Below, piece after piece: positions 11,124 through 64,000 of a stretch of 64,000 nt of DNA; within the stretch, counting starts at the first letter, position 1; the number at the start of each line of letters is the position of its first letter. Location of the stretch: contig CM121341.1 in the NCBI GenBank assembly GCA_051530055.1, positions 14,982,784-15,046,783 of the forward strand, given 5' to 3'. This DNA comes from Neoechinorhynchus agilis. Its lineage: Eukaryota; Animalia; Acanthocephala. The notes beneath the pieces are model-generated. The model did no database searches. It was not told where the DNA came from and saw nothing but the letters and a program-made list of their open reading frames with translations. The translations under genes and the position numbers were made by a program.

Positions 11124-11147
11124 ACTGAAGAATACAATCGAATAACG

Positions 11148-11586
11148 ATGAATGTATTCGGTCATGAAAACGTAGTACCGAATCGAAGATTTACAAAGTA
11201 CCAAATCTTCTATCTAAGTGATTGGTTTGATCGCCATTTCTCACATCCCTTTATGAATAACGAAGAGATCGATGCTGCGATGATGAATACGGGTAAGTTT
11301 GTTAAAATTGAGATTAAGACAAGGCTGATTAAAAATTTAAGGTCTTACAAAAAGACAAATCTGTAAATGGCTTTCGAATACACGGACACGGGCCATGAAT
11401 AAATTAGGTTACAATATGACGGATAGTCGACAAAAATATACCAGGAAGATGGGAGAAGTGAACTACTTTTCGACGCGCGAAAGTCTTGGAATATTTGATC
11501 CACCGCTTCATTGTTCTAAATTATCGAAAACTGACGGAATTACTCAGCCAGTTTTTACTTATGGCTTTAAATGGATAATTTATTGA
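11148..11586 (+). CDS. Divergent TALE-class homeodomain protein, copy C (129 aa)
   Basis: Exons 11148-11292 and 11342-11586 with a 49-nt GT-AG intron. The homeodomain is identical to copy A; there are 3 amino acid differences in the C-terminal tail. Confidence 0.8.
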
Positions 11587-12210: not shown

Positions 12211-13445
12211 TTTTTTTTAACAAGAGCATACATAATTTATAGTTTCTTCGACGCCCCTATTCATCGGCGCAGGCCAAAATGCTAGCCGCATTGCCCCGCT
12301 GCACCGCAATGCTTATTTTTTGGGCTAGGAACGAAGTCGATCTTGGCTCTCCAGTCGCCGCGTTGATTCGTTTCCCCAATTCCTTCACGAGGGCCAGTGC
12401 CGACCCTCCCAAGGCCCCATACGTTTCCACACCGAAGGGGACAAAATGGTAATTTCGGATTAGCTCCCTGTATTTTGAGCATTTACGATCCTCTGCAGCC
12501 GTCGCCGCTCCTCCTGGACCTTTTTTCGAGTGGCTGATGTTGGAGTTTGCCAACGTGTCCACACACGTTGCATCCCACAACAAACATTTTCCCTCCCGCC
12601 AAGGAAATACGGTCACGCCATCAGGGCGTCTTCCATCTAATCTACAAAGATTAGTGGGTTCTAGAATGTTTGGAAGGGAAAGCGTTTTTAGAGTCCTACT
12701 CAGAATGGCATTGATTTCAGCATGCCTTGGAAATCGTCCCGATGACGTCTTGCATATGAGACCGTGTCTCCCCGAAGAGTCCACTATAGTGCCGCAGCGG
12801 CAGCGATGCGGGATGCAAATCGGTAGGCCTAATCTCAAGGATACTGCGATCCTGGCGACTGAGTCAGCAAGGAGAGTTCCAAGTTTCCCTTCAGGGAGGG
12901 CATTCAACCACGCTCCCGACTCCTTCGTGGAACAGGCTACCAGCCGGACCTGAGACACCTCATCCAGAAGATCTTTGAAAGAGTTGTGAATCTTCTGAAC
13001 GAGAGGAATGTCCCAAGACGACTGCTTGCACTCATTTGCGGGGAGCTGGTTGATGCCTGTCAATCGATGCCATTGATATAATCCTGTTTCAAAGATCGCA
13101 TCCTTCAGCGATTTGCCTAAAATGGCATCGACATAGACTTTACTTGCCCGGCAAGAGGAGAGGAAGGCAGGTAAAGCGACGTCTGAAGTGGTGCGAACTC
13201 CCAAACCACCATAAGCCGTGGGAAAAGTAGCCTGTCGCCAACCTGTGTCAGAAAATTTGACATTCAATATATGTTTCAGCTGCTTACGAATTACCCCGTC
13301 GAGCTCTGCTAACAATTTGTCTTCTCCGAAACATGGAGCTGCTCTTAGCTTATGAAGCAATTTCGGCATATAGAGGCAATTCTTGATCAAGAAGAGACCC
13401 TCATGTGCCGAAAGCTCAGAAGTTCGGCCGCAGAGCAACTCCGTT
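12211..13445 (-). mobile_element. 5'-truncated CRE-like non-LTR retrotransposon (RT C-terminus, CCHC knuckle, restriction-like endonuclease)
   Basis: Open 393-aa frame with LP..GGLG.R (ATFPTAYGGLGVR), CRCG...HGLIC, RH, RPDG, WDATC and AEDRKCSKY. An A8 tail lies at 12211-12218, just after the stop. Confidence 0.85.
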
Positions 13446-13809
13446 TTCGGGTATATATACTTTCACTGGATAAATTTTGAACACTCGATTTTATAGCACG
13501 ATTATTTTTATAGGGAACTACTACTAACTGTCCTAACTGAGCGCATTATTTATTAAAATAAAATTGGAGCGTTGACTTCCACTAAATTTATTCTTACTTC
13601 CCTTATACATGACACGCGGCTTCCCCGGCGTTTAAAGCAACGAATAAAAAATATTCTTAATTCCTGTAGTTTCCCAGAAAAGCGGAGTATATGATTGAAC
13701 AATAAAAAAATTCAACAGGGTATTTCAAAAGTTTATAGCATTTCTAGTGAGCATTCTTTTGTCGAGCTACTTTTATCTTAAAAGTAATAAAAAAATAACA
13801 GTTGAGTGC

Positions 13810-16800: not shown

Positions 16801-19800
16801 AAAATAAAATACAGAACACGAAGACATTAATGCGTTTTATAATATAGAATTTGTATTTCTTGTGTAGGAATGAAGACATCCTTTTTCCACCCGCGCTTCT
16901 CATCTAAAATAAAATACAGAACACGAAGACATTAATGCGTTTTCAAATATAGAATTTGTATTTCTTGTGTAGGAATGTAAGACATCCCTGCTTTCCACCC
17001 GCGCTTCTCATCTAAAATAAAATACAGAACACGAAGACATTAATGCGTTTTATAATATAGAATTTGTATTTCTTGTGTAGGAATGAAGACATCCCTGCTT
17101 CTCATCTAAAATAAAATACAAACACGAAGACATGAATGCGTTTTCAAATATGGAATTTGTATTTCTTGTGTAGGAATGTAAGACATCCCTGCTTTCCACC
17201 CGCGCTTCTCATCTAAAATAAAATACAGAACACGAAGACATTAATGCGTTTTATAATATAGAATTTGTATTTCTTGTGCAGGAATGTAGGACATCCCTGC
17301 TTTCCACCCGCGCTTCTCATCTAAAATAAAATACAGAACACGAAGACATTAATGCGTTTTATAATATAGAATTTGTATTTCTTGTGCAGGAATGTAGGAC
17401 ATCACTGCTTTCCACCCGCGCTTCTCATCTAAAATAAAATACAGAACACGAAGACATTAATGCGTTTTATAATATAGAATTTGTATTTCTTGTGCAGGAA
17501 TGTAGGACATCACTGCTTTCCACCCGCGCTTCTCATCTAAAATAAAATACAGAACACGAAGACATGAACGCGTTTTCAAATATAGAATTTGTATTTTTGT
17601 GTAGGAATGTAAGACATCCCTGCTTTCCACCCGCGCTTCTCATCTAAAATAAAATACAGAACACGAAGACATTAATGCGTTTTATAATATAGAATTTGTA
17701 TTTCTTGTGCAGGAATGTAAGACATCACTGCTTTCCACCCGCGCTTCTCATCTAAAATAAAATACAGAACACGAAGACATTAATGCGTTTTATAATATAG
17801 AATTTGTATTTCTTGTGTAGGAATGTAAGACATCCCTGCTTTCCACCCGCGCTTCTCATCTAAAATAAAATACAGAACACGAAGACATTAATGCGTTTTA
17901 TAATATAGAATTTGTATTTCTTGTGCAGGAATGTAGGACATCCCTGCTTTCCACCCGCGCTTCTCATCTAAAATAAAATACAGAACACGAAGACATTAAT
18001 GCGTTTTATAATATAGAATTTGTATTTCTTGTGCAGGAATGTAAGACATCCCTGCTTTCCACCCGCGCTTCTCATCTAAAATAAAATACAGAACACGAAG
18101 ACATTAATGCGTTTTATAATATAGAATTTGTATTTCTTGTGCAGGAATGTAAGACATCCCTGCTTTCCACCCGCGCTTCTCATCTAAAATAAAATACAGA
18201 ACACGAAGACATTAATGCGTTTTATAATATAGAATTTGTATTTCTTGTGCAGGAATGTAAGACATCACTGCTTTCCACCCGCGCTTCTCATCTAAAATAA
18301 AATACAGAACACGAAGACATTAATGCGTTTTATAATATAGAATTTGTATTTCTTGTGTAGGAATGTAAGACATCCCTGCTTTCCACCCGCGCTTCTCATC
18401 TAAAATAAAATACAGAACACGAAGACATTAATGCGTTTTATAATATAGAATTTGTATTTCTTGTGTAGGAATGTAAGACATCCCTGCTTTCCACCCGCGC
18501 TTCTCATCTAAAATAAAATACAGAACACGAAGACATTAATGCGTTTTATAATATAGAATTTGTATTTCTTGTGCAGGAATGTAAGACATCCCTGCTTTCC
18601 ACCCGCGCTTCTCATCTAAAATAAAATACAGAACACGAAGACATTAATGCGTTTTATAATATAGAATTTGTATTTCTTGTGCAGGAATGTAAGACATCAC
18701 TGCTTTCCACCCGCGCTTCTCATCTAAAATAAAATACAGAACACGAAGACATTAATGCGTTTTATAATATAGAATTTGTATTTCTTGTGCAGGAATGTAA
18801 GACATCCCTGCTTTCCACCCGCGCTTCTCATCTAAAATAAAATACAGAACACGAAGACATTAATGCGTTTTATAATATAGAATTTGTATTTCTTGTGCAG
18901 GAATGTAAGACATCACTGCTTTCCACCCGCGCTTCTCATCTAAAATAAAATACAGAACACGAAGACATTAATGCGTTTTATAATATAGAATTTGTATTTC
19001 TTGTGTAGGAATGTAAGACATCCCTGCTTTCCACCCGCGCTTCTCATCTAAAATAAAATACAGAACACGAAGACATTAATGCGTTTTATAATATAGAATT
19101 TGTATTTCTTGTGCAGGAATGTAGGACATCACTGCTTTCCACCCGCGCTTCTCATCTAAAATAAAATACAGAACACGAAGACATTAATGCGTTTTATAAT
19201 ATAGAATTTGTATTTCTTGTGTAGGAATGTAAGACATCCCTGCTTTCCACCCGCGCTTCTCATCTAAAATAAAATACAGAACACGAAGACATTAATGCGT
19301 TTTATAATATAGAATTTGTATTTCTTGTGCAGGAATGTAGGACATCACTGCTTTCCACCCGCGCTTCTCATCTAAAATAAAATACAGAACACGAAGACAT
19401 TAATGCGTTTTCAAATATGGAATTTGTATTTCTTGTGTAGGAATGTAAGACATCCTTGCTTTCCACCCGCGCTTCTCATCTAAAATAAAATACAGAACAC
19501 GAAGACATTAATGCGTTTTATAATATAGAATTTGTATTTCTTGTGCAGGAATGTAGGACATCACTGCTTTCCACCCGCGCTTCTCATCTAAAATAAAATA
19601 CAGAACACGAAGACATTAATGCGTTTTATAATATAGAATTTGTATTTCTTGTGTAGGAATGTAAGACATCCCTGCTTTCCACCCGCGCTTCTCATCTAAA
19701 ATAAAATACAGAACACGAAGACATTAATGCGTTTTATAATATGGAATTTGTATTTCTTGTGTAGGAATGTAAGACATCCCTGCTTTCCACCCGCGCTTCT

Positions 19801-20850
19801 CATCTAAAATAAAATACAGAACACGAAGACATTAATGCGTTTTATAATATAGAATTTGTATTTCTTGTGCAGGAATGTAAGACATCCCTGCTTTCCACCC
19901 GCGCTTCTCATCTAAAATAAAATACAGAACACGAAGACATTAATGCGTTTTATAATATAGAATTTGTATTTCTTGTGCAGGAATGTAAGACATCCCTGCT
20001 TTCCACCCGCGCTTCTCATCTAAAATAAAATACAGAACACGAAGACATTAATGCGTTTTATAATATAGAATTTGTATTTCTTGTGCAGGAATGTAAGACA
20101 TCACTGCTTTCCACCCGCGCTTCTCATCTAAAATAAAATACAGAACACGAAGACATTAATGCGTTTTATAATATAGAATTTGTATTTCTTGTGTAGGAAT
20201 GTAAGACATCCTTGCTTTCCACCCGCGCTTCTCATCTAAAATAAAATACAGAACACGAAGACATTAATGCGTTTTATAATATAGAATTTGTATTTCTTGT
20301 GCAGGAATGTAAGACATCCCTGCTTTCCACCCGCGCTTCTCATCTAAAATAAAATACAGAACACGAAGACATTAATGCGTTTTCAAATATGGAATTTGTA
20401 TTTCTTGTGCAGGAATGTAAGACATCCTTGCTTTCCACCCGCGCTTCTCATCTAAAATAAAATACAGAACACGAAGACATTAATGCGTTTTATAATATAG
20501 AATTTGTATTTCTTGTGCAGGAATGTAGGACATCACTGCTTTCCACCCGCGCTTCTCATCTAAAATAAAATACAGAACACGAAGACATGAACGCGTTTTC
20601 AAATATGGAATTTGTATTTCTTGTGTAGGAATGTAAGACATCCTTGCTTTTCAAACGCTTTTCTCAATGGAAATAAAAACGAAACGCGAAGAAATGAGCG
20701 CGTACTATAATATCGGGTTTTGCTTACCTGTATTCGATCGTAAAACATCCATGCTTTTCAAACACCCATCTAAATTACAACGAGAAACAGAACGCGAACA
20801 CATAAACGCGATCTATAACATTGGGTTTTTATTTTTGAAACGGTTTTAAT
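13810..20850. repeat. 108-bp tandem satellite, about 57 homogeneous units plus degenerate edge units
   Basis: Unit taaaataaaatacagaacacgaagacattaatgcgttttataatatagaatttgtatttcttgtgcaggaatgtaagacatcactgctttccacccgcgcttctcatc; period checked at 14649 and 14757. Diverged copies lie at 13810-14430 and 20650-20850. Confidence 0.97.
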
Positions 20851-22727: not shown

Positions 22728-23740
22728 ATGTACCGAGTTGACAAGGAACAACTTAGAGATACTTCAAATGTTATCCTTTCCACGCCAAAGCGCTTTATAG
22801 ACTCCATAAAGGAATCATTGGACATACAAATTCAATCGATGAATTCTAACGAAATGGAATTCCATTTGAAAGGAGTAGATCCCTCTGTTGCTAATGCAAT
22901 AAGGCGTACTCTTTTATCGGACGTACCCTCAATGGCATTCGATCGATTCACTGTGCTAAACAATACATCAATTTTTCCAGATGAAATTCTGTGCCATAGA
23001 ATAGCTTTGATTCCTTTAAAAGCGGATCCTCGGCTCTTTGAGAGCAGACTAGAAAATGATCATGACAGTGGGTCTAATTCACTCAAATTTAGCCTGGAAC
23101 TAGTATGTGAGAAGATTGAGAATGAAGTAAAGTTTGAGAATGTTTATAGCCGCGACATCAAGTGGCATCCTTTAAAAAGCTGGTTAGGGTTTTGCTCGGT
23201 ATACGATTGAAACCATAATCGACTATGGGAGATCAGGCCGAATTTCTGAAGGAAACTGATGTCGCTCCAGTATCAAAAGATATTCTTCTTTTTAAAATGG
23301 TTCCTGGACAACGGATAAAAATGAATATGCTGGCCGTCAAAGGAATGGGCAGGGACCACGCTAAATTCTCACCCGTGTCCCTGGCTTCATATAGAATGTT
23401 ACCGACGATTAGTCTGAAAAAGCGTGTTCAGGGAGAGTTGGCTGTTCGACTTCAAAAGTGTTTCACCCCTGGAGTGATTGGACTAAGAGAAGGGGAAGGT
23501 GGACCCGAAGCGTATGTAATAGATCCTCTTCTGGATGCTTGCAGCCGTGAAGTATTTTTGTATCCGGAGTTAGCAGACTTAGTGGAACTCGGTCGAGTCA
23601 GAGACCATTTTGTGTTTAAAATTGAATCAACGGGTGCACTTAAACCTTATGAGTTATTCAACGAAGCCGTAAAAATCCTAATTCAAAAATGCCAGGAAAT
23701 CAAAAAGGACATCGATTTCGAACGCGTATTGAACGAATAA
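22728..23740 (+). CDS. POLR1C: RNA polymerase I/III shared subunit AC40 (RPC40), two exons
   Basis: EFHLKGVDPSVANAIRRTLLSDVPSMA...NNTSIFPDEILCHRIALIPLKADPRLF; GMGRDHAKFSPVSLASYR; RDHFVFKIESTGAL. The two ORFs need a ~53-nt intron near 23171-23231 whose borders are unresolved. Confidence 0.92.
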
Positions 23741-33974: not shown

Positions 33975-35050
33975 TGATAAATGACCGACGACAACGATGC
34001 CACTACCACCGACGACCCCGAGCCCGTCCCCTCGCCTCGCTCGGAACCTGGATGTTAGACCACAATATGAAGACGGAAACTTACCCGCCTGAAACAAGCC
34101 AAGTGAAGGGAACATCATCAATACGTCACTTTCAACTTCATCAGTCAAAGGTGTCACACGACCGAGCTTCTCTATAGGATTATGTGAGGTTTGTGATGGG
34201 ATTTTCTCCCTGACGAAAACAGGAGTTCTTACGGTCTATGGACCCCGTAATTCACGCTGCGGTGGTTCCGGTTCACCCTCTAAGTCCATTGATGGTGTGC
34301 GCCAGAATCCTCTCACGACATCACCAGTACAAAATGAAATTCCAAATGTAGGGAATATTGTGCGAGAGTTCTGCCCAGGAACGTTCTGAAAAGAATCCCA
34401 AGGGGCACGGGATATCAGGCCGCAAAAAGAGATTCACCGCTTTATTGACAGACTGTATCGAGACTAACTCAGAGTTGTCGTGGATGTGTCTCTCTGTGTT
34501 CCCTAGACTAGTATTTTCCGGAAGCAGAGATTGCCAATCTTCAATCGCAACTTTCGGTGCTGTGCGAACGAGTTGATGAATTATCTTTACACGATGCTCC
34601 GTTCCTTATCAAGAAAACCCACTTCATTCCAAAATCGTTGTATAAGCTGCACACACCGCGTTTTTTTAGACATAAGGGTAAGGTGGCAAGTTTAGATGAG
34701 ACGGTGAAAGCCTCTCTCGAGAAAATTTTAAATACTCAGCTGTCGGACGAGGCTTAGCGTCAAGCGTCCTTGCCTGTGTCGTCCGGCGGTTTGGGTATCC
34801 GAAAAGCAGCCGACATTTCTCTGCCAGCCTCTTATTTGGGATCGTATGAAGTCAGCCGCAAAATGGTTCAATCTTTTTTTGACGAGAATTACACTTTGGA
34901 TGAAGATTTAGTGAAGGCTCTTAATCTTTGGTGTGGAGACCCAGGCAGCGAGCAAGTACACGTCAATGGTTGCAAACAATCAGTTTGGGACTCACCCCTG
35001 GTAGCGAGAATTCATAACTCTTTAATTTCAGATTCTCATACCTGGTGAAC
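33975..35050 (+). mobile_element. Decayed, internally deleted CRE-like retrotransposon
   Basis: N-terminal zinc-finger-like CDGIFSLTKTGVLTVYGPRNSRCGGSG (~34195-34275). The later frame with stops, LCERVDELSLHDAPFLIKK...RQASLPVSSGGLGIRKAADISLP...KQSVWDSP, aligns by eye with 12257-13438. The RT core is missing. Confidence 0.7.
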
Positions 35051-46118: not shown

Positions 46119-49100
46119 TCACCACCGTCTTCTCGGCGTATTCTTATTTGAATCATGGACTTGTGAGGTCTTTGGCATAATATCTCCACCGCCGAATCTA
46201 CTTCGACTTTTATTTTCGACTACATTTTCATTTCTTCTATCGTTCCCACTTGTTTTATTTGTGGTACTTGTCAGATCGCCTTCAGCTGCTTCGGCTATTT
46301 CACTTTCGGTAGTCTTTGAGGTGTCTTCTTTGCTACCTTTATCTGCTGTGGTTCTCTCTGTTTCGCTCGGTTGGTCATTTACATTAATTTTTGATGAAAT
46401 TCTTGGCGAGTTAAGTTTGCCCGTTTCAAACGTTCCTGTTTTGAATCTACTACGCTTTTTTGGTTCCTCCTTTTCTGCTTTCTTTGTTTCGTTGAATTTT
46501 GGTGCAGCATCACTGCTCTTCTTTATCACAGGTAATCCCAATTTATTCGATTCTCCATTTTCATCCAACAATTTTGAAGTTGACACCTTTTTTGGTGCTT
46601 GTTGTCCTCCTTCTTTGCCTTCCACCGTTGTTGCAAAACGTTCTTTTGTTTTAGATTCCACGTTTGCTGTCTTATCTATATTTCCGACTTTTGTTGATTT
46701 CATTGTTTCACACGTTTCTTCATCATCATCTTTTTCAACTGTTGTTGCAAACCTTTCACGTCTTATGGGCTTGCTTTTTTCTAATTTTTCTGTTTTATTG
46801 ACGCTTTTTAATTCAACTTTTTTATCTGCCTCCGTAAATGTCTCCAACGTCTTTGGTTCAGACTTATTTTCATCTTTCTCATCCGCCGCTGCGAACCTTC
46901 CACGCCTTTTGGGCTTGCCCTCTTCTTCTTTTCCCGATGCACAAATCTTTTTAGTGTTGTCACTTACCTCCTTCTTATCTGGAGGTGTCTCTAACGTCTT
47001 TGGTTCAGACTTATTTTCATCTTTCTCATTGGCTGCTGCGAACCTTCCACGTCTTTTGGGCTTGTACTTTTCTTCTTTTTCCGATGTATTGGACTTTTTC
47101 GCCTTATCGTTAACCTCCTTCTTCTCTGAAGGTATCTCTAGCTTCTTTGGTTCAGACTTATTTTCATCTTTCTCGTCCACCGCTGCGAACCTTCCACGTC
47201 TTTTGGGCTTGTCCTCTTCTTTTTCCGGTGCAGCAGTCTTTTTAGCTTTATCGCTAACCTCCTTCTCTGTAAGCATCTCTAACTTCTTTGGTTCAGACTT
47301 ATTTTCACTTTTCTCATCCGCCGCTGCGAACCTTCCATGTCTTTTGGGCTTGTCCTCTTCTTTTTCCGGTGCAGCAGTCTTTTTCGCTTTATTGCTAACC
47401 TCCTTCTTCTCTGTAGGTGTCTCTAACTTCTTTGGTTCAGACTTATTTTCACCTTTCTCATCGGCTGCTGCGAACCTTCCAAGTCTTTTGGGCTTGTCCT
47501 CTTCTTTTTCCGGTGCAGCAGTCTTTTTCGCTTTATTGCTAACCTCCTTCTTCTCTGTAGGTGTCTCTAACTTCTTTGGTTCAGACTTATTTTCACCTTT
47601 CTCATCGGCTGCTGCGAACCTTCCAAGTCTTTTGGGCTTGTCCTCTTCTTTTTCCGGTGCAGCAGTCTTTTTCGCTTTATTGCTAACCTCCTTCTTCTCT
47701 GTAGGTGTCTCTAACTTCTTTGGTTCAGACTTATTTTCACCTTTCTCATCGGCTGCTGCGAACCTTCCAAGTCTTTTGGGCTTGTCCTCTTCTTTTTCCG
47801 GTGCAGCAGTCTTTTTCGCTTTATTGCTAACCTCCTTCTTCTCTGTAGGTGTCTCTAACTTCTTTGGTTCAGACTTATTTTCACCTTTCTCATCGGCTGC
47901 TGCGAACCTTCCAAGTCTTTTGGGCTTGTCCTCTTCTTTTTCCGGTGCAGCAGTCTTTTTCGCTTTATTGCTAACCTCCTTCTTCTCTGTAGGTGTCTCT
48001 AACTTCTTTGGTTCAGATTTATTTTCACCTTTCTCATCCACCGCTGCGAACCTTCCACGTCTTTTGGGCTTGTCCTCTTCTTTTTCCGATGCAACAGTCT
48101 TTTTCGCATTATCGCTAACCTCCTTCTTCTCTGGAGGTGTCCCCAACTTCTTAGGCCCAGACTTATTTTCATCTTTCGTATCCGCCGCTGCGAACCTTCC
48201 ACGTCTTTTGGGCTTGTCCTCTTCTTTTTCCGATGCAACAGTCTTTTTCGCTCTATCGCTAACCTCCGTCTTCTCTGGAGGTGTCTCTAAGTTCTTTGGT
48301 TCAGACTTATTTTCATCTTTCTCATCGGCTGCTGCGAACCTTCCACGTCTTTTGGGCTTGTTCTTTTCTTTTTCCAATGTATCGGTCTTTTTCGCTTTAT
48401 CGCTTACCTCCGTCTTCTCTGGAGGTGTCTCCAACTTCTTTGGTTCAGACTTTTTTTCATCTTTCTCATCGGCTGCTGCGATCCTTCCACGTCTTTTGGG
48501 CTTGTCCTTTTCTTTTTCCAATGTATCGGTCTTTTTCGCTCTATCGCTAATCTCCGTCTTCTCTGGAGGTGTCTCTAACTTCTTTGGTTCAGACTTATTT
48601 TCATCTTTTTCATCGGCTGCTGCGAACCTTCCACGTCTTTTGGGATTGTCCTCTTCTTTTTCCGATGCACCAGCCTTTTTAGTTTTGTCACCAACCTCCG
48701 TCTTCTCTGGAGGTTTCTCCAACTTCTTTGGTCCAGACTTATTTTCATCTTTCTCATCGGCTGCTGCGAATCTTCCACGTCTTTTGGGCTTGTCCTTTTC
48801 TTGTTTGTCCGATGTATCGGTCTTTTTCGCGTCATCCCTAACCTGCGTCTTCTCTGGAGGTGTCTCCAACTTCTTTAGTCCAGACTTATTTTCATCTTTC
48901 TCATCGGCTGCTGTGAACCTTTCACGTCTTTTGGGCTTGTCCTTTTCTTTTTCCGATATCTCGGTGTTTCCAGTTGCGAAGTCGGACTTTTTTCGCTTGT
49001 CTTTTGTACTAATTTTTGATGTTGTTGGTTTAGAAGTTTCGTCCGCTGCTGTGGCTGATGCAGCAAACCTGTTGTCTTTCTCCGTTTCATCCTTTAACCA

Positions 49101-50093
49101 TTCTTCGTCTTTGCTATTGTCTTCATGCGAGCTTTCACTGCTTTCGTTATCCTCTTTCTCAACACCGGTTTCCGCTTTTATATTTTTTTTTGGCCTCTCA
49201 TTGTGTTTTCCGACTTCTGACGCTATCAATTTCTTTTTTTTTCCTGTTTTTTCTTTCACTGTTCCCGCATTAGCTATTGGTTCTCCTTTTGACGAATCGC
49301 GAAATCTATCACGGGTTTTAGAACCCTCTACCAGTGCTTCAGTAATATCCTTTCTGGCTTCTAATATTTCACCTTCATCATCATCGGTCACTTTGTTTTC
49401 CGATGATTCGATCGCTTGCTTTGAGTGGTCTGCGCTCATCTTTCCTTCCTCAATTTTTTTTTGTTCTTCATTAACTTCGCCTATTGAATCATCTTCCGAA
49501 ATGCCTTCATCTACTTTACGTTCACTTTCTTCATCGTCTTTAGTTACATTGTCTATTGACTTTCTTTTCCCGTTTGCTATCTTCTTTAAGTTTTCAATTG
49601 CTACTTTATCTCCAACATCATCAACCACGTTGCCGTTATCTTCCTTTTTCTTTTTTCTCTTTTTTTCTTTTTTCTTATTAAATTTCTTCTCTTCATCCCC
49701 AAAACCGACTTTCTCCAAATCACCAGCATCTTCAATAGCTGTTTGTTCTTTAAAATCTTTTCTCTTCTTTTTCTTGACCTTTGAAATCCGTTCACTGTCT
49801 TCAGCGTCATTTTCAATATCCTTGCCTTTCTTTGCCCTTTTCCCTTTCCTCTGGATTTTCCCCTTTCTCTCCTCTGGAACATTTTCGTCACTCTCCACAC
49901 TCTTGATTTCGTTAGCTTTTTTTCCTTTTGATGTACGAGTCTCGGATTCATCGATGACTTCAGCGTCAACTTCCTCTTTGTTTGCGACAATCTCCTGTTC
50001 CTCTTCCACATCACTTTGCGACTCAATTTCTTCACTTTCTACTGTAGAAGCTCTCTCGTAGTTTAAAATTGAAACATGGTTGTAATGACCCAA
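46119..50093 (-). CDS. Large K/E-rich low-complexity protein or exon with 15 copies of a ~48-aa repeat
   Basis: Open for 1324 codons. Unit EKEEDKPKRRGRFAAADEKDENKSEPKKLETPPEKKEVSDKAKKTAAP with a 144-bp period (47401 and 47545); indels between units keep frame. True start and end not established. Confidence 0.8.
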   Translation of the reverse strand: MGHYNHVSILNYERASTVESEEIESQSDVEEEQEIVANKEEVDAEVIDESETRTSKGKKANEIKSVESDENVPEERKGKIQRKGKRAKKGKDIENDAEDSERISKVKKKKRKDFKEQTAIEDAGDLEKVGFGDEEKKFNKKKEKKRKKKKEDNGNVVDDVGDKVAIENLKKIANGKRKSIDNVTKDDEESERKVDEGISEDDSIGEVNEEQKKIEEGKMSADHSKQAIESSENKVTDDDEGEILEARKDITEALVEGSKTRDRFRDSSKGEPIANAGTVKEKTGKKKKLIASEVGKHNERPKKNIKAETGVEKEDNESSESSHEDNSKDEEWLKDETEKDNRFAASATAADETSKPTTSKISTKDKRKKSDFATGNTEISEKEKDKPKRRERFTAADEKDENKSGLKKLETPPEKTQVRDDAKKTDTSDKQEKDKPKRRGRFAAADEKDENKSGPKKLEKPPEKTEVGDKTKKAGASEKEEDNPKRRGRFAAADEKDENKSEPKKLETPPEKTEISDRAKKTDTLEKEKDKPKRRGRIAAADEKDEKKSEPKKLETPPEKTEVSDKAKKTDTLEKEKNKPKRRGRFAAADEKDENKSEPKNLETPPEKTEVSDRAKKTVASEKEEDKPKRRGRFAAADTKDENKSGPKKLGTPPEKKEVSDNAKKTVASEKEEDKPKRRGRFAAVDEKGENKSEPKKLETPTEKKEVSNKAKKTAAPEKEEDKPKRLGRFAAADEKGENKSEPKKLETPTEKKEVSNKAKKTAAPEKEEDKPKRLGRFAAADEKGENKSEPKKLETPTEKKEVSNKAKKTAAPEKEEDKPKRLGRFAAADEKGENKSEPKKLETPTEKKEVSNKAKKTAAPEKEEDKPKRLGRFAAADEKGENKSEPKKLETPTEKKEVSNKAKKTAAPEKEEDKPKRHGRFAAADEKSENKSEPKKLEMLTEKEVSDKAKKTAAPEKEEDKPKRRGRFAAVDEKDENKSEPKKLEIPSEKKEVNDKAKKSNTSEKEEKYKPKRRGRFAAANEKDENKSEPKTLETPPDKKEVSDNTKKICASGKEEEGKPKRRGRFAAADEKDENKSEPKTLETFTEADKKVELKSVNKTEKLEKSKPIRRERFATTVEKDDDEETCETMKSTKVGNIDKTANVESKTKERFATTVEGKEGGQQAPKKVSTSKLLDENGESNKLGLPVIKKSSDAAPKFNETKKAEKEEPKKRSRFKTGTFETGKLNSPRISSKINVNDQPSETERTTADKGSKEDTSKTTESEIAEAAEGDLTSTTNKTSGNDRRNENVVENKSRSRFGGGDIMPKTSQVHDSNKNTPRRRW

Positions 50094-50293
50094 AATTTTA
50101 TTTACAGTATTAAAAATCCTAAAAGATGCGGTGTTGATTTCGCTTGTAAAGGGACCGAGACGGATTTTAAAAATATGATAATGGAATAGATGCCAAAATA
50201 GATTCCGTCCTTGATCTTCTACGTAGGAAATTTTCTTAAAATCGTGTGTAGAATATTTTTTACGTTTTTATTATGGCGAAATAAAGAAATGTG

Positions 50294-50474
50294 ATTTATT
50301 CAGTATCTATGTGTGACCTTGTTCACGGCTGATAATTTTCCTTTCGCACACAGCCCACTGATCTGGTCCAGGGAAGCGCATAAAATCACTTAATACCCTG
50401 AACCACACGGTTGTGAGTTTGTACATCTCTCCGGATCTTCAGATACCTCGCCACACATAGATACTGAATAAATG
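50294..50474. mobile_element. Fold-back family member with 22-bp terminal inverted repeats
   Basis: Arms atttattcagtatctatgtgtg and cacacatagatactgaataaat; the body is homologous to 32899-33126. Confidence 0.75.
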
Positions 50475-51268
50475 TTACCGGCTGGCCAGACTTCAAAAAA
50501 TAAAAAGGATTTAGTTTTATTAAAATTTCGCCCTTTACGTGGAGTTTCTTTAGAATTTTTAAAGTGTTTTATCCCCAACGCTTAAGTGCGGATTGAACAC
50601 TTTAGCAATTCTGAAGAAGTAGCACATATACGACGAAATATTAAAATTAAATCATTTTTCCTTATTTCGCCTGACCACAAATGAGCGCATTCTGAAATAT
50701 GAATCTTGTCTTACCCAACAAGAATCAGCCAGACGCATCTCAATTTTTTCTAAAAACCACAACTATATCCATAGCATATTCATTTAGAGATACATTGTTT
50801 TGAATAGAGTATTAATTTTTATCAGTCTCCTTCATATCTAGCCTAGCCATTAACACATGTAAACATAGTAATGGGACTTGGGAATGTTCCCGGCGCATTG
50901 TCTCTGCTACAACAAAATGAACGGCAAGCATAACAGTACGCAAAAAGCAAAATTCGTCGAGTTGTCGCCAAAAACAACAAGTTGTCTCATATTTCAATTT
51001 CCCGATCTAATAGTTTCATAAACTGCGTACATATAGAAGGGAGAAAAGTAAGTGAGATGCGTGTATTAGTGCTCATTGCAAAAAAATCGATTGGCTTAGA
51101 AAATTGGTTTGTTTTATTTAGGTCCCGTGAAAAGTTGTGACGTTAACTTTCTGAATTAAAGCAACAAGTCTTCACCTTTCAAACCTATCAATTAAATTAT
51201 TTATGGCAATTTTTATCTTTTTTAGACTTTAGTATTTAAAACTAAGCGTTAAAAAAGTATACTATAGG

Positions 51269-53986: not shown

Positions 53987-54460
53987 AAAATTGGTTTATC
54001 GTCATTATGAAATCGACTTCTTATTCCGATGAAAATAGATTGCGGTCGTTGTTGCGCACTATATTTGTTTTATTCTCATTACCTTATAAAATTAGGAAAT
54101 ATGCGATGATCCTTAGAAAGTTTTATCAACTCGAAAAATTGAACATTGAGTTCGTGATATTTTAACAAATTTTGAATCATCTAATGGAATATCGAATTTA
54201 GTACAACCAATTCATATTGAGTGAACTAAAAACAATTTTAGTAAGAGAAATCAGACAAAAACGAAATTGGCTGTATAGGGACAGAAACGTACCCTCACAA
54301 GACCATTAGATTCCCTTTAAAAATCGATGAATCCCCCGATTGACGTTCTAGCATTCGAACTTTTCAATAAGGATTGCTAGGGCGAAGACTATGAAAGTGT
54401 AAAATTACATACCATCCCACAATCAGACCGAGAAAAATCGATTTTCGAATGGAAGAAATT

Positions 54461-56731
54461 CTAGCCGAAGCATTTTATTCTGTCATTAGAAAGAAGTGAG
54501 AATGATAAGCTGTTTTTGTCGAATCTGAGAGGTATTCTACCAAGCTCACCATCATAGCGATTTTTCACAACATCAAGGAACTTAAAAACCTCGAGTCGTC
54601 CGTCGCTGGTATAAACCTTATTTTCCTGTAGGATAAGCACATTATCTGCTTCTTGAGACGCTTTAGCTGAACCGAAAATGCTTTGCATATTAAGATACTG
54701 CGCACCGCCGGATTCATTTTCCTTCCTTGGATGGATAACAAGTGTCACGTGGCAGTTATATACCGTTGCGAATCGTCGAAGTGAATGCACAATTACGTCT
54801 TGCCGATAAAATCGATCAGTGCATCCGTAATCCATTCCCATCATAAATTGAAGGTTGTCGATAATAACATGCTTTAAGGTGCCGCTTGATCCTCAATGGT
54901 TGTCGCCCGAATCCGAAAAGAGAATCAAACTCGCATATTCGGTGAACCATGACGGCGGACGCCATGGTTGCTGTTACTCGTTGAATGTTACATGCTCCAT
55001 GAAAGTTCATATAGTACATTGGGAGGCGGTCAAAAGACCCGGAACAATCTGCGAAGAATTGCTCGTTTTGAAGACGCAAACTGCTTCCACAATATTGAAT
55101 AATCATTGTCTTAGCTAAGCGATGATTTTGAAGTTCAAAACTTCCCCACAGTGTTGATAGTTTAGAACAGATAAGAAGCATTATTTTAAAGAATAGTCAC
55201 TTAAAGGTAACATTTCGAGAAGTAGCTGTTTTTTGGATAGGGCACAAATCGGTATGTAGATTATTTAGAAATATTCTTTTATGTCAGCGATCAAAAGTGC
55301 AATTTTTAAAAACTAAATGAAAGTGCAAACTTCTGAATGAAACTAAATTTAAAAGATCAGATAAAACCGACGAAATTTACTTCAAATTAAGAGTCATAAC
55401 ATTGTCTAAAAGGCTATTAAAAAATTTGGAGTTGATTTTTCAACAGAAATATTTAAACACGTAAGTTTTATGTTTAGTTCGATATTCAGAAAAGATGGAT
55501 TTAACCCCGGAATTTGAAATGTTCTAATGATCTTGTCTGTATAGAATTCACACATAGGTCAAGACTGTAATCACTAAGGAACGTAGTCTTTCCACAACCA
55601 GTGGAACCAGTTAGTACTGTCAGTTCTCCAAGCCTGTGACCTTTCAGGATTTGATTAAGCAGAGGATACCGCTGCCAACGAGCACCGCTGTATTGCTCTT
55701 GACTAGTTAATTCGCTCCTTACTGCATCTTGAAAATAACTGAATTTCTGAATCTCTTCATTTATAATGGGATAGGCATCTTGAAACAAAGGTTTTACTGA
55801 TTGACCAGCCTGCTGACGGATTTGTTTTGGAGGCTGAAGTGAGCTCATTAGGAAACAACGCTGCGGATTTAGCAAACTGGCTAACTGAAACAATTTTTCA
55901 CTAGTTTTCTCGTCACTCGGCCACAAATACACTTTTTTAAACTGATCGAACATCGCCAAAATGAAATCATCTATGATTTGAATTCTCGATCTTGTCTAAA
56001 AATAGCTCAGATCAACAGAATTCAAAATATATAGGAAAGAATAGGAGAGCCAGACAAGGTTTTGACTGTCCAATTGCCTCGTAGGCGTTCAATGCATCTT
56101 CCACGCAACTTGTCACAATGACTTCAGTATGTCTCGGATTGAGAGTTTGAAGGCCAAACATAGGATATGAAGTCTGCATTGAAGTAAAAGTCACAGCATC
56201 GATTATTGTGCTTCTATCGGCCCCAAAGATTGGAAAAACGAACACGCGTTCGGCTGAATCATCCTTCATTCGACACACTTTTGCTCCATATTTACACAAA
56301 GTAGATCTACTTAAATCCGAGAATTCGGAAGATTGATCTTCACCGGTTTTGTATTTGCACAATAAAGGGCTATCAGATAATTTGATTTGAGTTCGACGAC
56401 AAGATTTAAGCTTTTGCGCCAACGCCAGCTCCAAATCGCCCCTTGAACCATGCCGATGACAATGAAGACAGACGAAACGGCCTGTTTGCTTCTCAATGTA
56501 GAATTTGGTGGTTGATTGCTGGTGAGCATTTAACGAAGATTCCATTGAGCTTTCATTTGAACCATATCCAGTGGATAGAGGACATTGATTGCGACATCGG
56601 TAGAAATTCCAACCTTGGTCTGCTTGAAGAGCATGATTTCTCAGAAGGTCGCGAACATCATGAAGATCCCTCAGTTGTCGGGTAAAACCACTTTTTGTAG
56701 CTAAAATACTTACCAACCGCTTTCCTAACAT
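54461..56731 (-). CDS. TWNK: Mitochondrial replicative helicase Twinkle, 4 exons
   Basis: FVCLHC zinc domain, [40 protein letters not shown] (Walker A), [39 protein letters not shown] and KNRYDG. Likely start at ATG 56731. All three intron borders are atypical. Confidence 0.93.
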
Positions 56732-56929
56732 TACGCCTTCCTCTAGCAGCAACACAACAGAATACCTTCCCAAAAAGGTTCAAGTCGCTTGATCTGCTTT
56801 GTCTAAAAAGGAGAAGGATAATCACCGATTTTAAGGCAAGCGTCCGGAAGAATGATTGTTTATCGAAGAAAATTGTAAGGAATTTCGATCGTGTTTAAAT
56901 TGACACTTGGGCGGGATTTTGTAGTGATA

Positions 56930-58600
56930 AACAACAACATTTCTTTGAACTTTTCTCCCACTTGAGAGGTCGTTCTTTTCAGCATTGTCGGTTTTCGTCT
57001 TTGTTCTCCTTTCCGAGAGTCTTGAGATCTCCGCTCACACTGTCCTCCCGCCTCTTCTTGGGCATCCCTCTTCTCCTTTTCCCCTCGAGCTCGATTCTCC
57101 ATGCGCTCTTCACCCAGGCATCTTCATCTGCTTGTGTCACCTGCAGGTACCATCGCATTCGCCTCTTAGCGATTGCCTCCTTCATCGGCTCGATAACAAA
57201 CAGTTTTCGCACCTCCTCGTTGGGCACTTGATCCTTGCGTGTCAATCATGCGGACCATCTCAGCATCCGCATTTCGTTGACGGCTAATCGTTGAGCGTCT
57301 TCCTTCTTCATAGCCCACGTCTCTGCTCTGTAGAACCATGGCGGGCTTGCTCTTCGAGCTTGTTCGGGAGATGCTTATCGCAAAGGATGGCTGTTGTCTT
57401 CCTCCAGTTGTTCCAGCTGCATTGAACTCTTTGCCCGATCTATGGTGCGAGCTCACATTGCATGTTCAACAGGCTGCCCAAATATTTGAATGTGTTCATC
57501 TTTTCGATCTGAGTTCCTTGCATATCGAGGTTACCCGGCCCCATGTATTTCGTTTTGCGCCTGCTCACTCAATCCGTTGCTCTCTAATCGCTGTCGCCAA
57601 CTCTCCAGCAAATTCCTGAGCGTGTCCACGTCCCTAGCTGTGAGCACCAACTTGTCCGCGAATAGTATCGTCCATGGTGCGTTTATTTCTCTTTCCGCAT
57701 TTCCAAGGACGTCTATCACGATCGCAAACAAGAATGGGCTCAGGGCCGAACCCTGTTGCAGGCCCACGGAGACTCGAAATAGTCGGTCGTTCAGCTGTGG
57801 CATCGCACGCAGGTGTAGCATACTCGATGCATTGCTTGGACCACGGCGACATAGTGTTCGGGGCAATTCCTTTTCCTGAGGCATGCCCACACCAGATCTC
57901 AAAGGACTGTGTCGTACGCTCCTTCCAAATCGACGAACACACTGTGCAACGGGCACTGCATCTCACTGAACCTCTCATACAGCTGCCTTAGCACGAATAT
58001 TGCGTCAATTGTGCTTCTGCGCCGGGCATGAATCCTCGTTAGTCTTGGCTGATTTGGATCTCCTCTCTAATCCTGTGATCGATCATTCGTTCCCACAGTT
58101 TCATTGTGTGAGGCATGAGTTTGATGCTCCGGTAGCTCCTACACTGCAGAACATCTCCTTGGCTTTTGAAGATCGGTATCAATATGCTTCCCTGCCATTC
58201 CGACGGGATCTTTTCCTCCGAATCTATCTTCTGAAAGAGCCTCGCGAGCAACTTTATTCCGAAGACTCTCAGGGATTGCCACAGCTCGATCGGAATGTTA
58301 TCTGGACCAACACTCCTACCAGTCTTCATTTTCCTGAGCTGTGCAACCACCTCATCGAACGAGTACGGCCTCATCATATTGACATTCGGGTGTACGTCCT
58401 CTAGAGGCAGTCTGTCATGCTCAGTGTTAAGCAGAGTGCTAAAATATTCCTTCCACCTATCCAAAATATCTTTGCACTGGTACAGCGTCTTTCCGTGGCT
58501 ATCACTGATCATTTTGAGGTGCACGACATCGCGCGATTTTTTATCCCTTACTTTGGCCAAGAAAATCTTTATTTTCGAGCTTACATCTTTGTTAGTTATC
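56930..58600 (-). mobile_element. 5'-truncated, decayed RTE-clade LINE
   Basis: ILDRWKEYFSTLLN, MKTGRSVGPDNIPIE, ILIPIFKSQGD...YRSIKLMPHTMKLWERMI, GFMPGRSTIDAIF, GLQQGSALSPFLF, ILFADKL, RKDQVPNEEVR and GKRRRGMPKKR, with frameshifts between ORFs. Confidence 0.92.
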
Positions 58601-58612
58601 AGAAGAGCGATA

Positions 58613-58647
58613 TTCCTGAAGAAGCAGTAAAACGGCGAAAGCTAGAA
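58613..58647 (+). ncRNA. Minimal type I hammerhead ribozyme motif followed by AATAAA
   Basis: UUC-CUGAAGA-A-GC(aguaaaacg)GC-GAA-AGCU-A-GAA: stem I UUC/GAA, palindromic AGCU stem III, H17=A, AATAAA at 58648-58653. Confidence 0.65.
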
Positions 58648-58852
58648 AATAAAGATTTTTCTTTATCATTACAGCAACCCAAATGTAAATTTTCGAAAAC
58701 AATACTTGATCAATCATGTGGCTGGAAAATCAAGTAGTATTTCACAAGGTTAATTAATTTAGAATTTATTATTTTTCGAATGAATTGCCGTTTCAGCGGT
58801 GTGTCTTTTAAAGTCTAAATGTTTTGTTTACTTCTGAACTTTTTTGCCATGT

Positions 58853-60413: not shown

Positions 60414-63400
60414 TCACTCCTGTAAAAGCATAGCGACTCCTGCGATTATCCACTTAGCTTTATCGTCTTTTGTTTTCAGTGGAAACTTTGAAACATAATT
60501 GGGTCCTCGAGTCCTAACCCTGTACATTGGGCACTCGTATGTTCCACGCAAATCCATTTGATCGCTCAAAACTGCTCGGACGTGAACTACAGGCAACAGT
60601 TCAGTTACCTCATTTGAAACACAATCGACTAAAACTCCATCTGCTGTACTATATGAAGCCCCGTCAATATAAACTCCATGAATGTATACGCCTTCCTTTA
60701 GTGCCGGCAAGTATTCACCCGTCGATCTTTTGGTGATACCAAAAGTCAAACTGATTTTGTCGAGGGGCCATTTGTTAGCCCGTGCACTAGTTTGCATTAT
60801 TGCAGTTAAAAATGATTGAGGATTGAATAGTCCACCTAGCCAAACAGTTCGAGGAAGAACTCCGGAGGACATCCATGTGTCCAGTTCTCGGTATCGTTCG
60901 TTAAGATCAGTCATCCATGCACCCAAAGGAAGTAAGGAAGGATACGCTTTCTGTGCCCATAAAGGAGGAACTTGATTCATCTCTAAGCATTCTTGCAAAT
61001 GTTCCATCGCTATAGACATCGTTAGTTCTCCACGGAATCCGGCCGCCAATTCTTTTAAACTGTTCCTGATTTCAGTCAACAACAAATTCATTTGATGGCA
61101 TTCCTGAAGGCCTACGACGTTATATGGAGTTCGCTCAGTCAAGCGTATCTCGATTTCAACCAACGAAAGGTCCTCTGGTACAATCATTAAGATGTTCTCA
61201 ACTAAAGCTAGTAGCCTCTCCTCTCGACTGACCACCTGCATTGCATCGTCAATTACCTGACTAATGACTGTCTGAAGTTTAAGTGTTTCCGCAAAAAGTT
61301 TGTTTGCAACGGTCTGTGTAAATTTGATCTCAACATTCGAATGCATTCCATATTGAGTAGGTGACTCATTTTTAAGATTTTTCTCAACGTGAAAGATGTA
61401 ATCTTCTATTGTATCAACCACCTCAGGAAGCGGGAACGACGGATAAATGGTGGCACCTCTATGGACCTAAACAAAGCAGGGAAATTTTAGAAGTTAAACA
61501 TTATCATTTAAAACATTCTTGTCCTTTTAAGCGACCCACAGCAGTGACGGAGGTTGAAACGCATACGGGAAATAAACGTCTATTTTTTATTTTATTATAT
61601 GTGGCAATCGTCGATTTTTATCGGGATAATATTAAAAAGTTTAAAAGTTACGATCAGCGTGATGGCGACGGTCGAGGAAGGACAAAAGCTGGAATTCGGC
61701 GGGAGGTGGTGAGTGTGTTAATTGTCGAGAGATGAAGATTAATAAAAGTAGGGATCACAAGACGAGTAGAAGATTTGGGAAGTTATCTTCCGCTCCAATT
61801 AAATTAAGTCTAGGATTTTTCTCTTAAAGTAAACAAAAGGTTGAAAAATCCTTTGTACCAAAACTATTAAAAACAACAATATTTGAGTTGCTTATTGTCC
61901 ATTACACAAAAATCTTACCATTGATTTGTTAAGAAATTTTTCAAGATATGTTCGGCACATTCTGCGATCCCAATCATCCGTGATATGTCCACCGTACATT
62001 ATTTCTCCAATTAAATATCTCAGATCCGTCCATGGAACATTTGTAGCTTCACGGAATACGTGACTGACTAAAAGGTTTACGCATATATTCAAATCGCTCA
62101 TGCCAAACGGATAACTCTTGTTCCATCCAATTGCTCCGTACTTTCGTCGTTGTGTTATCGCAGCATGGAAGTAGCACATCGCAAAAACTAGTTGCTTAAT
62201 AAATCCTGCATTGGGTGGAATATCGAGGCAATCAATATAATTTGTATCCTCTAGTGCTTTACATAGATTTATACTAAGTCCCGTGGGTGGCTCGTTTGTT
62301 ATCTTCAACGACATTTCCAATATTCCGTTCGGTATGACATGAAGAGACGCATCCACTGCTGGTTCAGCCGTTAAAAAAGCTCTATATTTGGCATGACCTT
62401 TGAAGCTATTGTTCTCAAGTATTTTCTCAAGAGTAGGAAGCCATGTTGCAACAAGATGTATATTCTGAAGAACGACCCAATGCCCTTGTTTACTTGCCTT
62501 TAGAAGAGCTTGTTCAGCCAAATTCTCTTGACCTTGACCAAGCGAAACGTTAAAAAGATTCCCCCTTTCCATAGAAAATCCCAATTTTTCTCCAAACGCT
62601 TCTAGTTCATTAACTGGATCAACGCCTGGTGACAATATAAAGAACACTGGAATTGTGTTGTCACTCTCATCAAAAATCTCTTCCATACTGGTAGTTATCG
62701 GCTTGCGAAATTCTGGACCGAGAGTATTCTCAATGTAGCGGCTAAACAAGAAACAGGATTAAAACATAGCTTATTAACATTGTAAAATTTACCTAACAGA
62801 AGCGAGAATTTTATCCGGTCGCAATGCACGTTGCAGGCATAGTCTTTCAATCGCATTTATTTTGTTCCATGGTGAAGGAAGATCGGCGTCTTCAGGAGTT
62901 TTCGAAGACAAAAAAGATTCCCAGCGTTTTGGATTACTTAAAAAATCGTCGGTTATCCCAGCGAATAACGGAATCGATGAAAGTCTTCGTACTGCTGACC
63001 ATACTTTGCTGGAAAGGAGTTCAGTTGGTGAATTCTCTTCTTCTACATCAAATCGGAGTAAAAAGTCGAGTAGATCCATATCACTAATCTCATGATCGGA
63101 TTTGCTAACCTAGTATGAAAATGTATATCGAATTTGTGATGATAATTATTTTATAAAAAATGAGGCGCGCTGGTGATTTGTTAAAAACGCGCTCAACAAT
63201 TATATTTGCTATAATTCGAAAATCTTTTACAGACAAAGGTACTAATAACAAGCTCGAACTTACACTTATTGCCAATTGGAAAGCCAATAGTAACTTGTGC
63301 TCCTCGAAAAGACCACGGCAAGCATAAGAATAAAGATGGTATGTGACTGAGTGCATTATTTGAGCAACACGATTTGTTTGGTCCACTCCTTCCGCCATAC

Positions 63401-64000
63401 TTTGGACTCCGCGTCTAAAAACCGTTCTGAAAGCTCTGAGATTATATCTGTACATCGGGTGGATTTTTTGTAAATCCGATAATAGCGCGAAAATCGTAGT
63501 TCCTCGAATAGCGGTTGATCTGTAAAAATTCCTTGATTTGTCAATATTCTCATTTAATTTCTTCGCTTCCTCAGTGTCCAATTCGATGGCTTTAGAAGTT
63601 CTGACATTCTTTTCCAGTGACTCAACTAACTCAACATTTTGAACGAAATTTCCTTCCGCCTCGGACAACATTTTCAGCAGAGATGACTCGAGATCTTTTA
63701 GTTCTACTTTGTTTTTATTAAGAGTCGATGTCGTCTGCTTCTTGCTCTCCTCCAAAGCAGGATTTTCCTAGATATTTGAAATTTTGTGATTCAATTGATG
63801 ACAAACCGATTTATCTTACAGATTCAACCACTATACTAAGCAGCTGAGATTCAAGACTTTGTGGTGTTGCGTTGAAGTCAATCAAAGTTACTAAAGCTTG
63901 TATTTCCGGACGGAATACAGGATTAGCAAATCGGGTATGAAGAACGACCATAAACTTCTCATTAACCAAACAATTTTTACCATCTATCGAAAGTTGATAA
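60414..64000 (-). CDS. Axonemal dynein heavy chain, outer-arm beta type (DNAH9/11/17-like), 3' part
   Basis: PVFFILSPGVDP, VSLGQGQE, GHWVVLQNIHLV, KITNEPPTG, YLIGEIMYGGHITDDWDRR, WLGGLFNPQSFLTAIMQ, YECPMY and KWIIAGVAMLLQ*. Four GT-AG introns are visible; the gene continues beyond the window. Confidence 0.95.

Follow-up and report, generated by a model that had tools for sequence, protein, structure and literature searches.

How are introns removed when their borders do not carry GT and AG, and are they removed at all? This question is raised by the gene for the Twinkle helicase (TWNK) of the eoacanthocephalan Neoechinorhynchus agilis (Acanthocephala), located in a 64-kb stretch of contig CM121341.1 (assembly GCA_051530055.1) that was analyzed as a whole and is called the window here; record coordinates correspond to window positions plus 14,982,783. 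An earlier note on this DNA had proposed that all three Twinkle introns fit homology best with borders other than GT-AG. Our analysis agrees with this proposal, since intron 2 has no GT-AG option and those of introns 1 and 3 cost about 10 bits each, and it adds a fourth case in the gene for RPAC1/POLR1C. We propose, with a confidence that is about even, that N. agilis employs permissive U2-type splicing which admits GC-AG, GA-AG and A(N)-AC introns. The genome of this species, of 46.2 Mb, is a hybrid assembly of Illumina and long reads from pooled worms that was annotated with BRAKER, and it was published together with 74 N. agilis RNA-seq libraries in a paper that does not mention introns (PMC12690905).

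Twinkle is encoded on the minus strand, from an ATG at 56731 to a TAG at 54463-54461, by four open segments that lie in three frames. Exon 1 (56051-56731) starts at this ATG, keeps an open frame through the N-terminal primase-like region and is 100% identical to the GenBank model P0047; its end falls at 56051 with the GC-AG borders preferred below, at 56044-56045 with 49-nt introns and at 56017 in the GenBank model. Exon 2 (55535-55995) comprises the linker and Walker A (GSTGCGKT) and ends in ...DLCVNSIQ(T), exon 3 (54933-55152) extends from (T)LWGSFE to MVHRIC, and exon 4 (54461-54871) from a Walker motif through the C-terminus to the TAG. The joined product, of around 590 residues, has all the helicase motifs, and its approximately 1.8 kb of coding sequence contains no frameshift or stop. 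Its identity is given by an SF4/DnaB-like helicase domain with Walker A, Walker B and the H3/H4 motifs, and by collinearity with metazoan Twinkle over the full length. The nearest full-length relatives of the exons are rotifer Twinkle proteins (52% identity, E = 2.9e-110), and the joined product aligns with human Twinkle (7T8B, PDB, E = 7e-98) without gaps across junctions 2 and 3. A HMMER scan of 1.84 billion representative sequences with exon 4 gave no match above 67% identity, the top ones examined being rotifer-like or mammalian and none acanthocephalan. The public annotation divides the gene: P0047 (394 residues) takes out intron 1 at a GT-AG pair and continues into intron 2 until a stop is reached, P0121 (121 residues) starts within intron 2, covers exon 3 and runs through intron 3, and exon 4 is absent.

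Each possible placement of the two borders of an intron, here called a drawing, was scored in Twinkle with a profile built from 88 metazoan orthologs, 43 of which are displayed in the alignment, and every in-frame, stop-free GT-AG, GC-AG and AT-AC pair was enumerated around each intron in question. Only intron 2 lies beyond any GT-AG or GC-AG solution. The 382-nt AA..AC excision that the earlier note had placed at 55534-55153 (intron 2, 55153-55534, minus strand) was recovered with a profile score of 517.6 bits and the exact length; it yields DLCVNSIQT LWGSFE, is gapless against human 7T8B and keeps the six-residue spacer of all orthologs. The absence of an AG acceptor, also claimed before, is equally clear. 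Upstream AGs occur at 55314, 55277, 55227 and 55201, the last of which (55201-55200) runs straight into a TGA (55199-55197) in the frame of exon 3, the final 48 nt of the intron contain none, and the next one, at 55142, is already inside LWGSFE. Among the in-frame, stop-free pairs enumerated, no GT-AG or GC-AG pair retains the invariant LWGSFE.

The borders of intron 2 can be placed in several ways. ACA is repeated at both of them, so that AC..CA, CA..AA and AG..CA drawings (starts 55536-55533) give the same mRNA; a TA..AC drawing (55541-55160) leads to SISTLWG, and the AT..AC drawing that had been pointed out earlier (55531-55153) exists, adding one Arg and scoring 511.0 bits. The AA-AC and AT-AC drawings both have A as the first and C as the last nucleotide and stay in frame, as is expected of an A..C-ended U2-type intron, and these two good drawings have one common 3' end, AC|A at 55154-55153, which is preceded by a CTTAT branch-like motif (55175-55171) and a pyrimidine run. 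To restore GT..AG here at least three base changes would be necessary, which makes a base-call error unlikely in an Illumina-supported hybrid assembly (PMC12690905). The Twinkle gene of Aplysia has a GT-AG intron at the site of intron 2, in phase 1 within the Val codon of QGV|xTLWG. In Adineta vaga, too, this point of the protein is interrupted by an intron, and its sequence as listed can be slid to GT-AG borders; the offset between the N. agilis intron and these two is 0-5 nt. Considering that the position is common to Aplysia and Adineta vaga, intron 2 is most likely an ancient intron with altered ends and not a new insertion. The other ancient introns of the gene have been lost in N. agilis, where Twinkle has three introns; the Aplysia gene has at least 11 and that of Adineta vaga 12. 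Intron loss is extensive in the lineage.

For intron 1, the earlier note had described a 49-nt excision that slides between several borders. These drawings all exist (TA..GA 56043-55995, CT..AG 56044-55996, AT..AC 56042-55994), but a GC-AG option of 55 nt at 56050-55996 had been overlooked (intron 1, 55996-56050, minus strand; ctg GCTCTC...TTTTTAG aca), and it is the one we prefer. The profile gives 517.6 bits to TA..GA, the best free drawing, 513.7 to GC-AG and 507.5 to the GT-AG pair at 56016-55971, and the GC-AG drawing restores the spacing from a conserved Gly to the Pro position as found in the human and rotifer proteins. Homology constrains this intron weakly, with 55 drawings no more than 5 bits from the best, a number that falls to 17 in intron 2 and to 10 in intron 3. 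For intron 3 (54872-54932, minus strand, 61 nt; tgc GAGTTT...TTAAAG cat) the preferred borders are GA-AG, and both the GA..AG (54932-54872) and the AT..AC (54936-54879) drawings are present as described before. Its GT-AG option, 54930-54885, inserts DGTLK, and no insertion precedes HVIID in any of the 43 displayed orthologs (of 88 aligned). Introns 1 and 3 are thus left with a possible GT-AG alternative each, both of 46 nt, and the judgment of the earlier note that these fit poorly is borne out by a loss of approximately 10 bits in each case. The positions of these two introns were not found in the species compared.

The fourth case lies about 33 kb from Twinkle in the gene for RPAC1, a subunit shared by RNA polymerases I and III, which occupies 22728-23740 on the plus strand in two exons (human RPAC1 7A6H, E = 1.8e-73, PDB search). 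Its intron breaks the gene between WHPL and GDQAEF, within the motif KWxPxGxQ, the length of which is fixed in homologs from yeast to human. The best free drawing (23175-23227, AA..TG) gives WHPLGDQ and the preferred one is GC-AG at 23179-23231 (53 nt, plus strand; aaa GCTGGT...TGGGAG atc), which produces KWHPLKNQAEF; the profile scores are 292.6 bits for the free drawing, 291.1 for GC-AG and 277.8 for GT-AG. The sole in-frame GT-AG pair that retains the start of exon 2 (AEFLKET), at 23199-23236, is 38 nt long, loses 13-15 bits and swaps GxQ for eight other residues. The GenBank model of this gene, P0123 (160 residues), ends inside the intron. In the mollusc Tegillarca the RPAC1 intron sits five codons downstream of the N. 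agilis position, which leads us to consider the N. agilis intron as one at a new position. Arbitrary borders, of the kind given by AA..TG in RPAC1 and TA..GA in intron 1, were entertained and then dropped once the exhaustive enumeration gave GC-AG solutions for both.

These four introns, referred to below as the odd introns, were set against the remaining introns of the region. Among those that can be placed by homology in the window and its flanks (n = 23), 19 are GT-AG and four are not. An axonemal dynein heavy chain gene that lies upstream (DNAH9/17-like, PDB E = 5.6e-161) contributes ten introns of 43-452 nt, all of them GT-AG with good consensus, and its junctions, where compared with DNAH9, are gapless or within one residue; the others belong to a septin gene (six), a TALE homeobox gene (one) and a DNAJC11-like gene (two). 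Local GT-AG introns mostly measure 42-55 nt, and the odd introns are of like size. The lengths of the latter (55, 382, 61 and 53 nt) include no multiple of three and each of them contains stops, so every one has to be removed. Given that the 19 nearby introns are plain GT-AG, three introns in one gene with no good GT-AG solution are more than chance. The suggestion of the earlier note that a non-canonical class is mixed with ordinary introns stands insofar as 19 GT-AG introns are found beside others for which GT-AG is impossible or improbable, now including that of RPAC1; it requires amendment insofar as the borders need not be arbitrary, intron 1 and RPAC1 being compatible with GC-AG, intron 3 with GA-AG and intron 2 with A(T/A)-AC.

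We therefore consider the following scheme as a candidate explanation. Twinkle would be a working four-exon gene, and its three introns and that of RPAC1 would not differ in size or composition from ordinary short spliceosomal introns and would be excised by the major (U2-type) spliceosome although the GT..AG pair is missing. The catalytic end nucleotides would be retained, either a first G together with a final AG or a first A together with a final AC, and position +2 and the remaining donor would be free. The ends that result would be GC-AG in intron 1, A(A/T)-AC in intron 2, GA-AG in intron 3 and GC-AG in RPAC1. The compatibility of G1 with G-last and of A1 with C-last is known from yeast and mammalian splice-site suppression studies. 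The spliceosome of N. agilis would be permissive in the manner of those of Oikopleura dioica and Eurytemora affinis, and its permissive introns would stand beside a majority of strong GT-AG ones. Both splicing at these borders and its attribution to the U2-type spliceosome we infer from the genomic sequence.

All four odd introns offer a G..AG or A..AC drawing, with C, A, C and A (or T) at +2, and the joint chance that four introns do so, given their acceptable drawings and the local base composition, is approximately 0.017; the rule is suggestive and no more. The preferred drawings are cheap, at 3.9 bits for intron 1, 0 for intron 2 (AA-AC), 0 for intron 3 and 1.5 for RPAC1, whereas a GT-AG solution is unavailable in intron 2 and in the others costs 10-15 bits and brings in residues unseen in the displayed homologs. 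Several observations weigh against the scheme. The four donors (CTG GCTCTC, GAC AAGATC, TGC GAGTTT and AAA GCTGGT) match the local consensus at +1 only, and known donors of the GC-AG and GA-AG classes usually compensate by strongly conserved flanks, AG|GAA in the case of Oikopleura and Eurytemora (PMC7072748). In RPAC1 the intron would end in GAG, an acceptor used by none of 17 local GT-AG introns. The borders are under-determined, with 10 to 55 drawings no more than 5 bits from the best, so that the rule rests on p ~0.02, and the sample amounts to just 23 introns, while for three of the four odd introns a GT-AG pair that is in frame and of plausible size is also available. Searches of sequence databases with exon 3 alone and with the RPAC1 junction matched the truncated models of this same genome only, and no transcript-derived sequence.

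In a rival reading intron 2 alone is odd, being AT-AC or of a similar rare type, and introns 1, 3 and that of RPAC1 use GT-AG, their proteins carrying lineage-specific insertions (11 residues replacing LP... at intron 1, DGTLK before HVIID, and KSWLGFCS replacing GxQ). GT-AG is the overwhelming prior in animals, in-frame stop-free pairs of 46, 46 and 38 nt are at hand, their donors (GTTGAT, GTTTGA, GTATAC) resemble local ones such as GTTAGG, GTTTGT and GTATTA, and GenBank model P0047 adopts the pair in intron 1. Even so we hold this reading to be unlikely: it costs some 10 bits in intron 1, some 10 in intron 3 and 13-15 in RPAC1, no displayed ortholog has insertions at these places, KWxPxGxQ and HDIxHVIID do not vary in length between yeast or insects and human, the 38-nt option in RPAC1 is shorter than every local GT-AG intron, and the junctions at the 19 GT-AG introns, where compared with homologs, have no gaps or almost none. 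A different view is that RNA structure or a transposon past sets the borders, a hairpin bringing the exons together, as modeled for Amoebophrya introners, the non-conventional introns of Euglena and the introns of Fritillaria derived from miniature inverted-repeat transposable elements. Intron 2 has the ACA direct repeat at its borders and, on the minus strand, an inverted repeat whose 5' arm at 55520-55532, GATCATTAGAACA, pairs with TGTTCTAAACTATC at 55169-55156 (a perfect core of 8 bp, 13-14 nt with a loop). This repeat falls within 15 nt of each end, and 8 bp between the first and last 30 nt were reached in 95 of 5000 shuffles (p ~0.02); the layout is that described for Amoebophrya non-canonical introns (PMC7789003), and pairing is also possible at intron 3, between the final 7 nt of exon 3 and the exon 4 junction. 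Over the four odd introns, on the other hand, the ends pair, by energy, only slightly better than in 15 GT-AG introns or in mismatched pairs (Fisher p ~0.15), fold z-scores range from -0.2 to -1.1, no 6-mer is common to three or more of them, and intron 2 has no second copy in the window and sits at an ancient position, which makes this explanation quite improbable.

It could also be that there is nothing to splice, either because this Twinkle copy does not function, being a pseudogene of recent origin or a defective allele present among the pooled worms, or because the borders were assembled incorrectly. Loss of Twinkle is known from some animals, nematodes for example, and the GenBank models are truncated at the odd introns. 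The assembly, moreover, derives from pooled individuals and mixed read types (PMC12690905). However, some 1.8 kb of coding sequence is undamaged, with motifs kept and 52% identity to rotifers, yet at least 5 of 12 splice-site bases are changed, a pattern that is not neutral; at least three substitutions are required at intron 2; and the feature recurs in RPAC1, a gene of the essential and single-copy type. We judge a defective copy or a faulty assembly to be very improbable. Scarcely credible is excision from DNA instead of RNA, by which the inserts would be ciliate-like, TA-bounded internal eliminated sequences cut out in somatic nuclei. Intron 2 can be drawn between two TAs, one of which is retained, with in-frame SISTLWG, its left end TACAG resembles the Paramecium end consensus, and all four odd introns can be drawn with a TA start. 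The retention of TA nevertheless shifts the frame in RPAC1, no listed TA-starting drawing of introns 1 and 3 has TA after its end, the right end of intron 2 is off consensus, and this intron occupies an ancient spliceosomal intron position; we know of no TA-bounded DNA excision in Syndermata. Permissive U2-type splicing remains the reading to which we give most weight.

A number of further candidates were tried and rejected. Nested or recursive splicing fails in intron 2, where the inner GTTAAA...TTTAAG (55505-55200) leaves 76 nt and a frameshift, and in RPAC1, where the inner GT..AG pairs lead to a stop or a frameshift. TGA read-through, translational bypass and a split protein were discarded on account of mismatched take-off and landing codons and a gap of 382 nt, and A-to-I editing that creates GU or AG because no consistent AT..AA drawing exists. 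A 10-nt identity between the 3' border of intron 1 and the 5' border of intron 2, AGACAAGATC, is at chance level in the self-comparison (E = 18). Rfam and tRNA scans for RNA genes in the introns of the window were empty, Rfam finding none in the 64 kb.

The dynein heavy chain gene (window 60414-64000, minus strand, continuing over L001 1-6315) is spread over four GenBank models, and three of the breaks coincide with textbook GT-AG introns (L001 657-707, 3469-3622 and 4814-5265). Fragmented GenBank models were for this reason rejected as a marker of odd introns; the breaks at canonical introns imply that the public annotation is unreliable for causes unrelated to them. Several genes of the region, namely those for RPL18, RPS25, actin, TFIIF-beta and SH3BGR, a TBP-like gene and a CBM21 gene, are apparently single open reading frames, and the single open frames of RPL18 (window 4827-5447, plus strand), RPS25 (5658-6023, plus strand) and actin (L006 3472-4602) are single-interval models in GenBank as well. 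TALE-class homeobox genes are present as two near-identical inverted copies (6561-7020, minus strand, and 11124-11583, plus strand) with a partial third between them (9341-9601, minus strand); the first has its GT-AG intron (6851-6803) inside the homeodomain, and the inverted copy has the same layout of two open reading frames. A satellite array of 58 copies of a 108-bp unit (95% matches) extends over 14409-20650, with two diverged units immediately upstream (14072-14348). A large gene on the minus strand (46119-50738; GenBank model of 1030 residues) contains a coding tandem repeat of 144 bp, or 48 residues, in 14.7 copies (46839-48957), and shows an extreme AT skew (about -0.5) and long open frames on both strands. 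Reverse-transcriptase-like open frames with stops and frame changes, corresponding to decayed retroelements, occur at 57000-58650 (minus strand), directly upstream of the Twinkle start, at 12260-13462 (minus strand) and at 34000-35000.

Only a handful of animals are known to depart from GT-AG to more than a trace extent, namely Oikopleura and Fritillaria among larvaceans and Eurytemora among copepods. A literature search turned up no such introns in acanthocephalans or rotifers. That acanthocephalans independently evolved a permissive major spliceosome, with around one in six N. agilis introns starting with something other than GT, an ancient AC-ended intron devoid of minor-spliceosome signal among them, and with donors recognized without the usual U1-type consensus, appears to us tenable, if slightly short of an even chance. 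If confirmed, another independent case, in Syndermata and again in a genome that has become drastically compacted, would tie relaxed splice-site recognition more firmly to compaction and intron turnover, and would provide a new system for studying how the 5' splice site is found without a U1-type consensus. It would also mean that BRAKER annotations limited to GT-AG truncate Twinkle and RPAC1, and that flawed annotation may account for some of the gene losses described in these parasites; as Twinkle (394 and 121 residues, without exon 4) and RPAC1 (160 residues) are cut short, statements on acanthocephalan gene content and gene loss that derive from GT-AG-only gene finders need checking.

The proposed introns can finally be compared with known intron classes. 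U12-type introns tolerate AT-AC and other ends and have a short distance from branch site to 3' end, but their defining 5' motif, RTATCCTT, is missing at every border of the odd introns, which speaks against a U12-type identity. In agreement with the earlier note, which had found no U12 consensus, no exact match is present in 54400-56800 or around the RPAC1 intron, and matches with one mismatch fall inside exons or in mid-intron, never at borders; near the 3' end of intron 2 the branch site TCCTTRAY is matched at 6 of 8 positions at best (TTCTTATC at 55177, TTCTAAAC at 55167). With the introner-type introns of Amoebophrya and the non-conventional introns of Euglena (PMC7789003, PMC12501133) the odd introns have in common variable end dinucleotides and, in intron 2, the direct repeat at the borders and the inverted repeat near the ends; they differ in that end pairing is not significant over the four introns, no repeated family exists, the host is an animal and most of its introns are canonical.

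GC-AG introns are the standard second class of U2-type introns and account for about 1% in most animals. In-frame GC..AG ends, ordinary length and near-optimal homology bring intron 1 and the RPAC1 intron close to this class; unlike its usual members, they do not have the strong context AG GCAAGT, with its compensating consensus, but CTG GCTCTC and AAA GCTGGT, and two of 23 introns would make up about 9% here. GA-AG introns are frequent only in Oikopleura dioica and Eurytemora affinis (PMC7072748). Intron 3, best drawn as GA..AG, recalls these, and as in Oikopleura it belongs to a very small, compact genome with introns of about 50 nt, heavy intron turnover and coexisting canonical introns, whereas the flank AG|GAA of those species is replaced by TGC GAGTTT and there is a single, putative example here. 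In Fritillaria borealis non-GT/AG introns dominate (>90% non-canonical) and are processed by a U2-type spliceosome (PMC13326754). The best drawings of intron 2, which start with A and end with AC, are reminiscent of U2-type AT-AC introns and of the A..C-ended introns of Fritillaria (AG-AC and related); on the other side, intron 2 lacks a donor resembling ATAAGT and would gain an extra residue if drawn with the AG-AC ends that are typical of Fritillaria, and non-canonical introns are a minority in N. agilis. If our reading is right, N. agilis would be a further, independent member of this known permissive-splicing kind, with unusually consensus-free donors.

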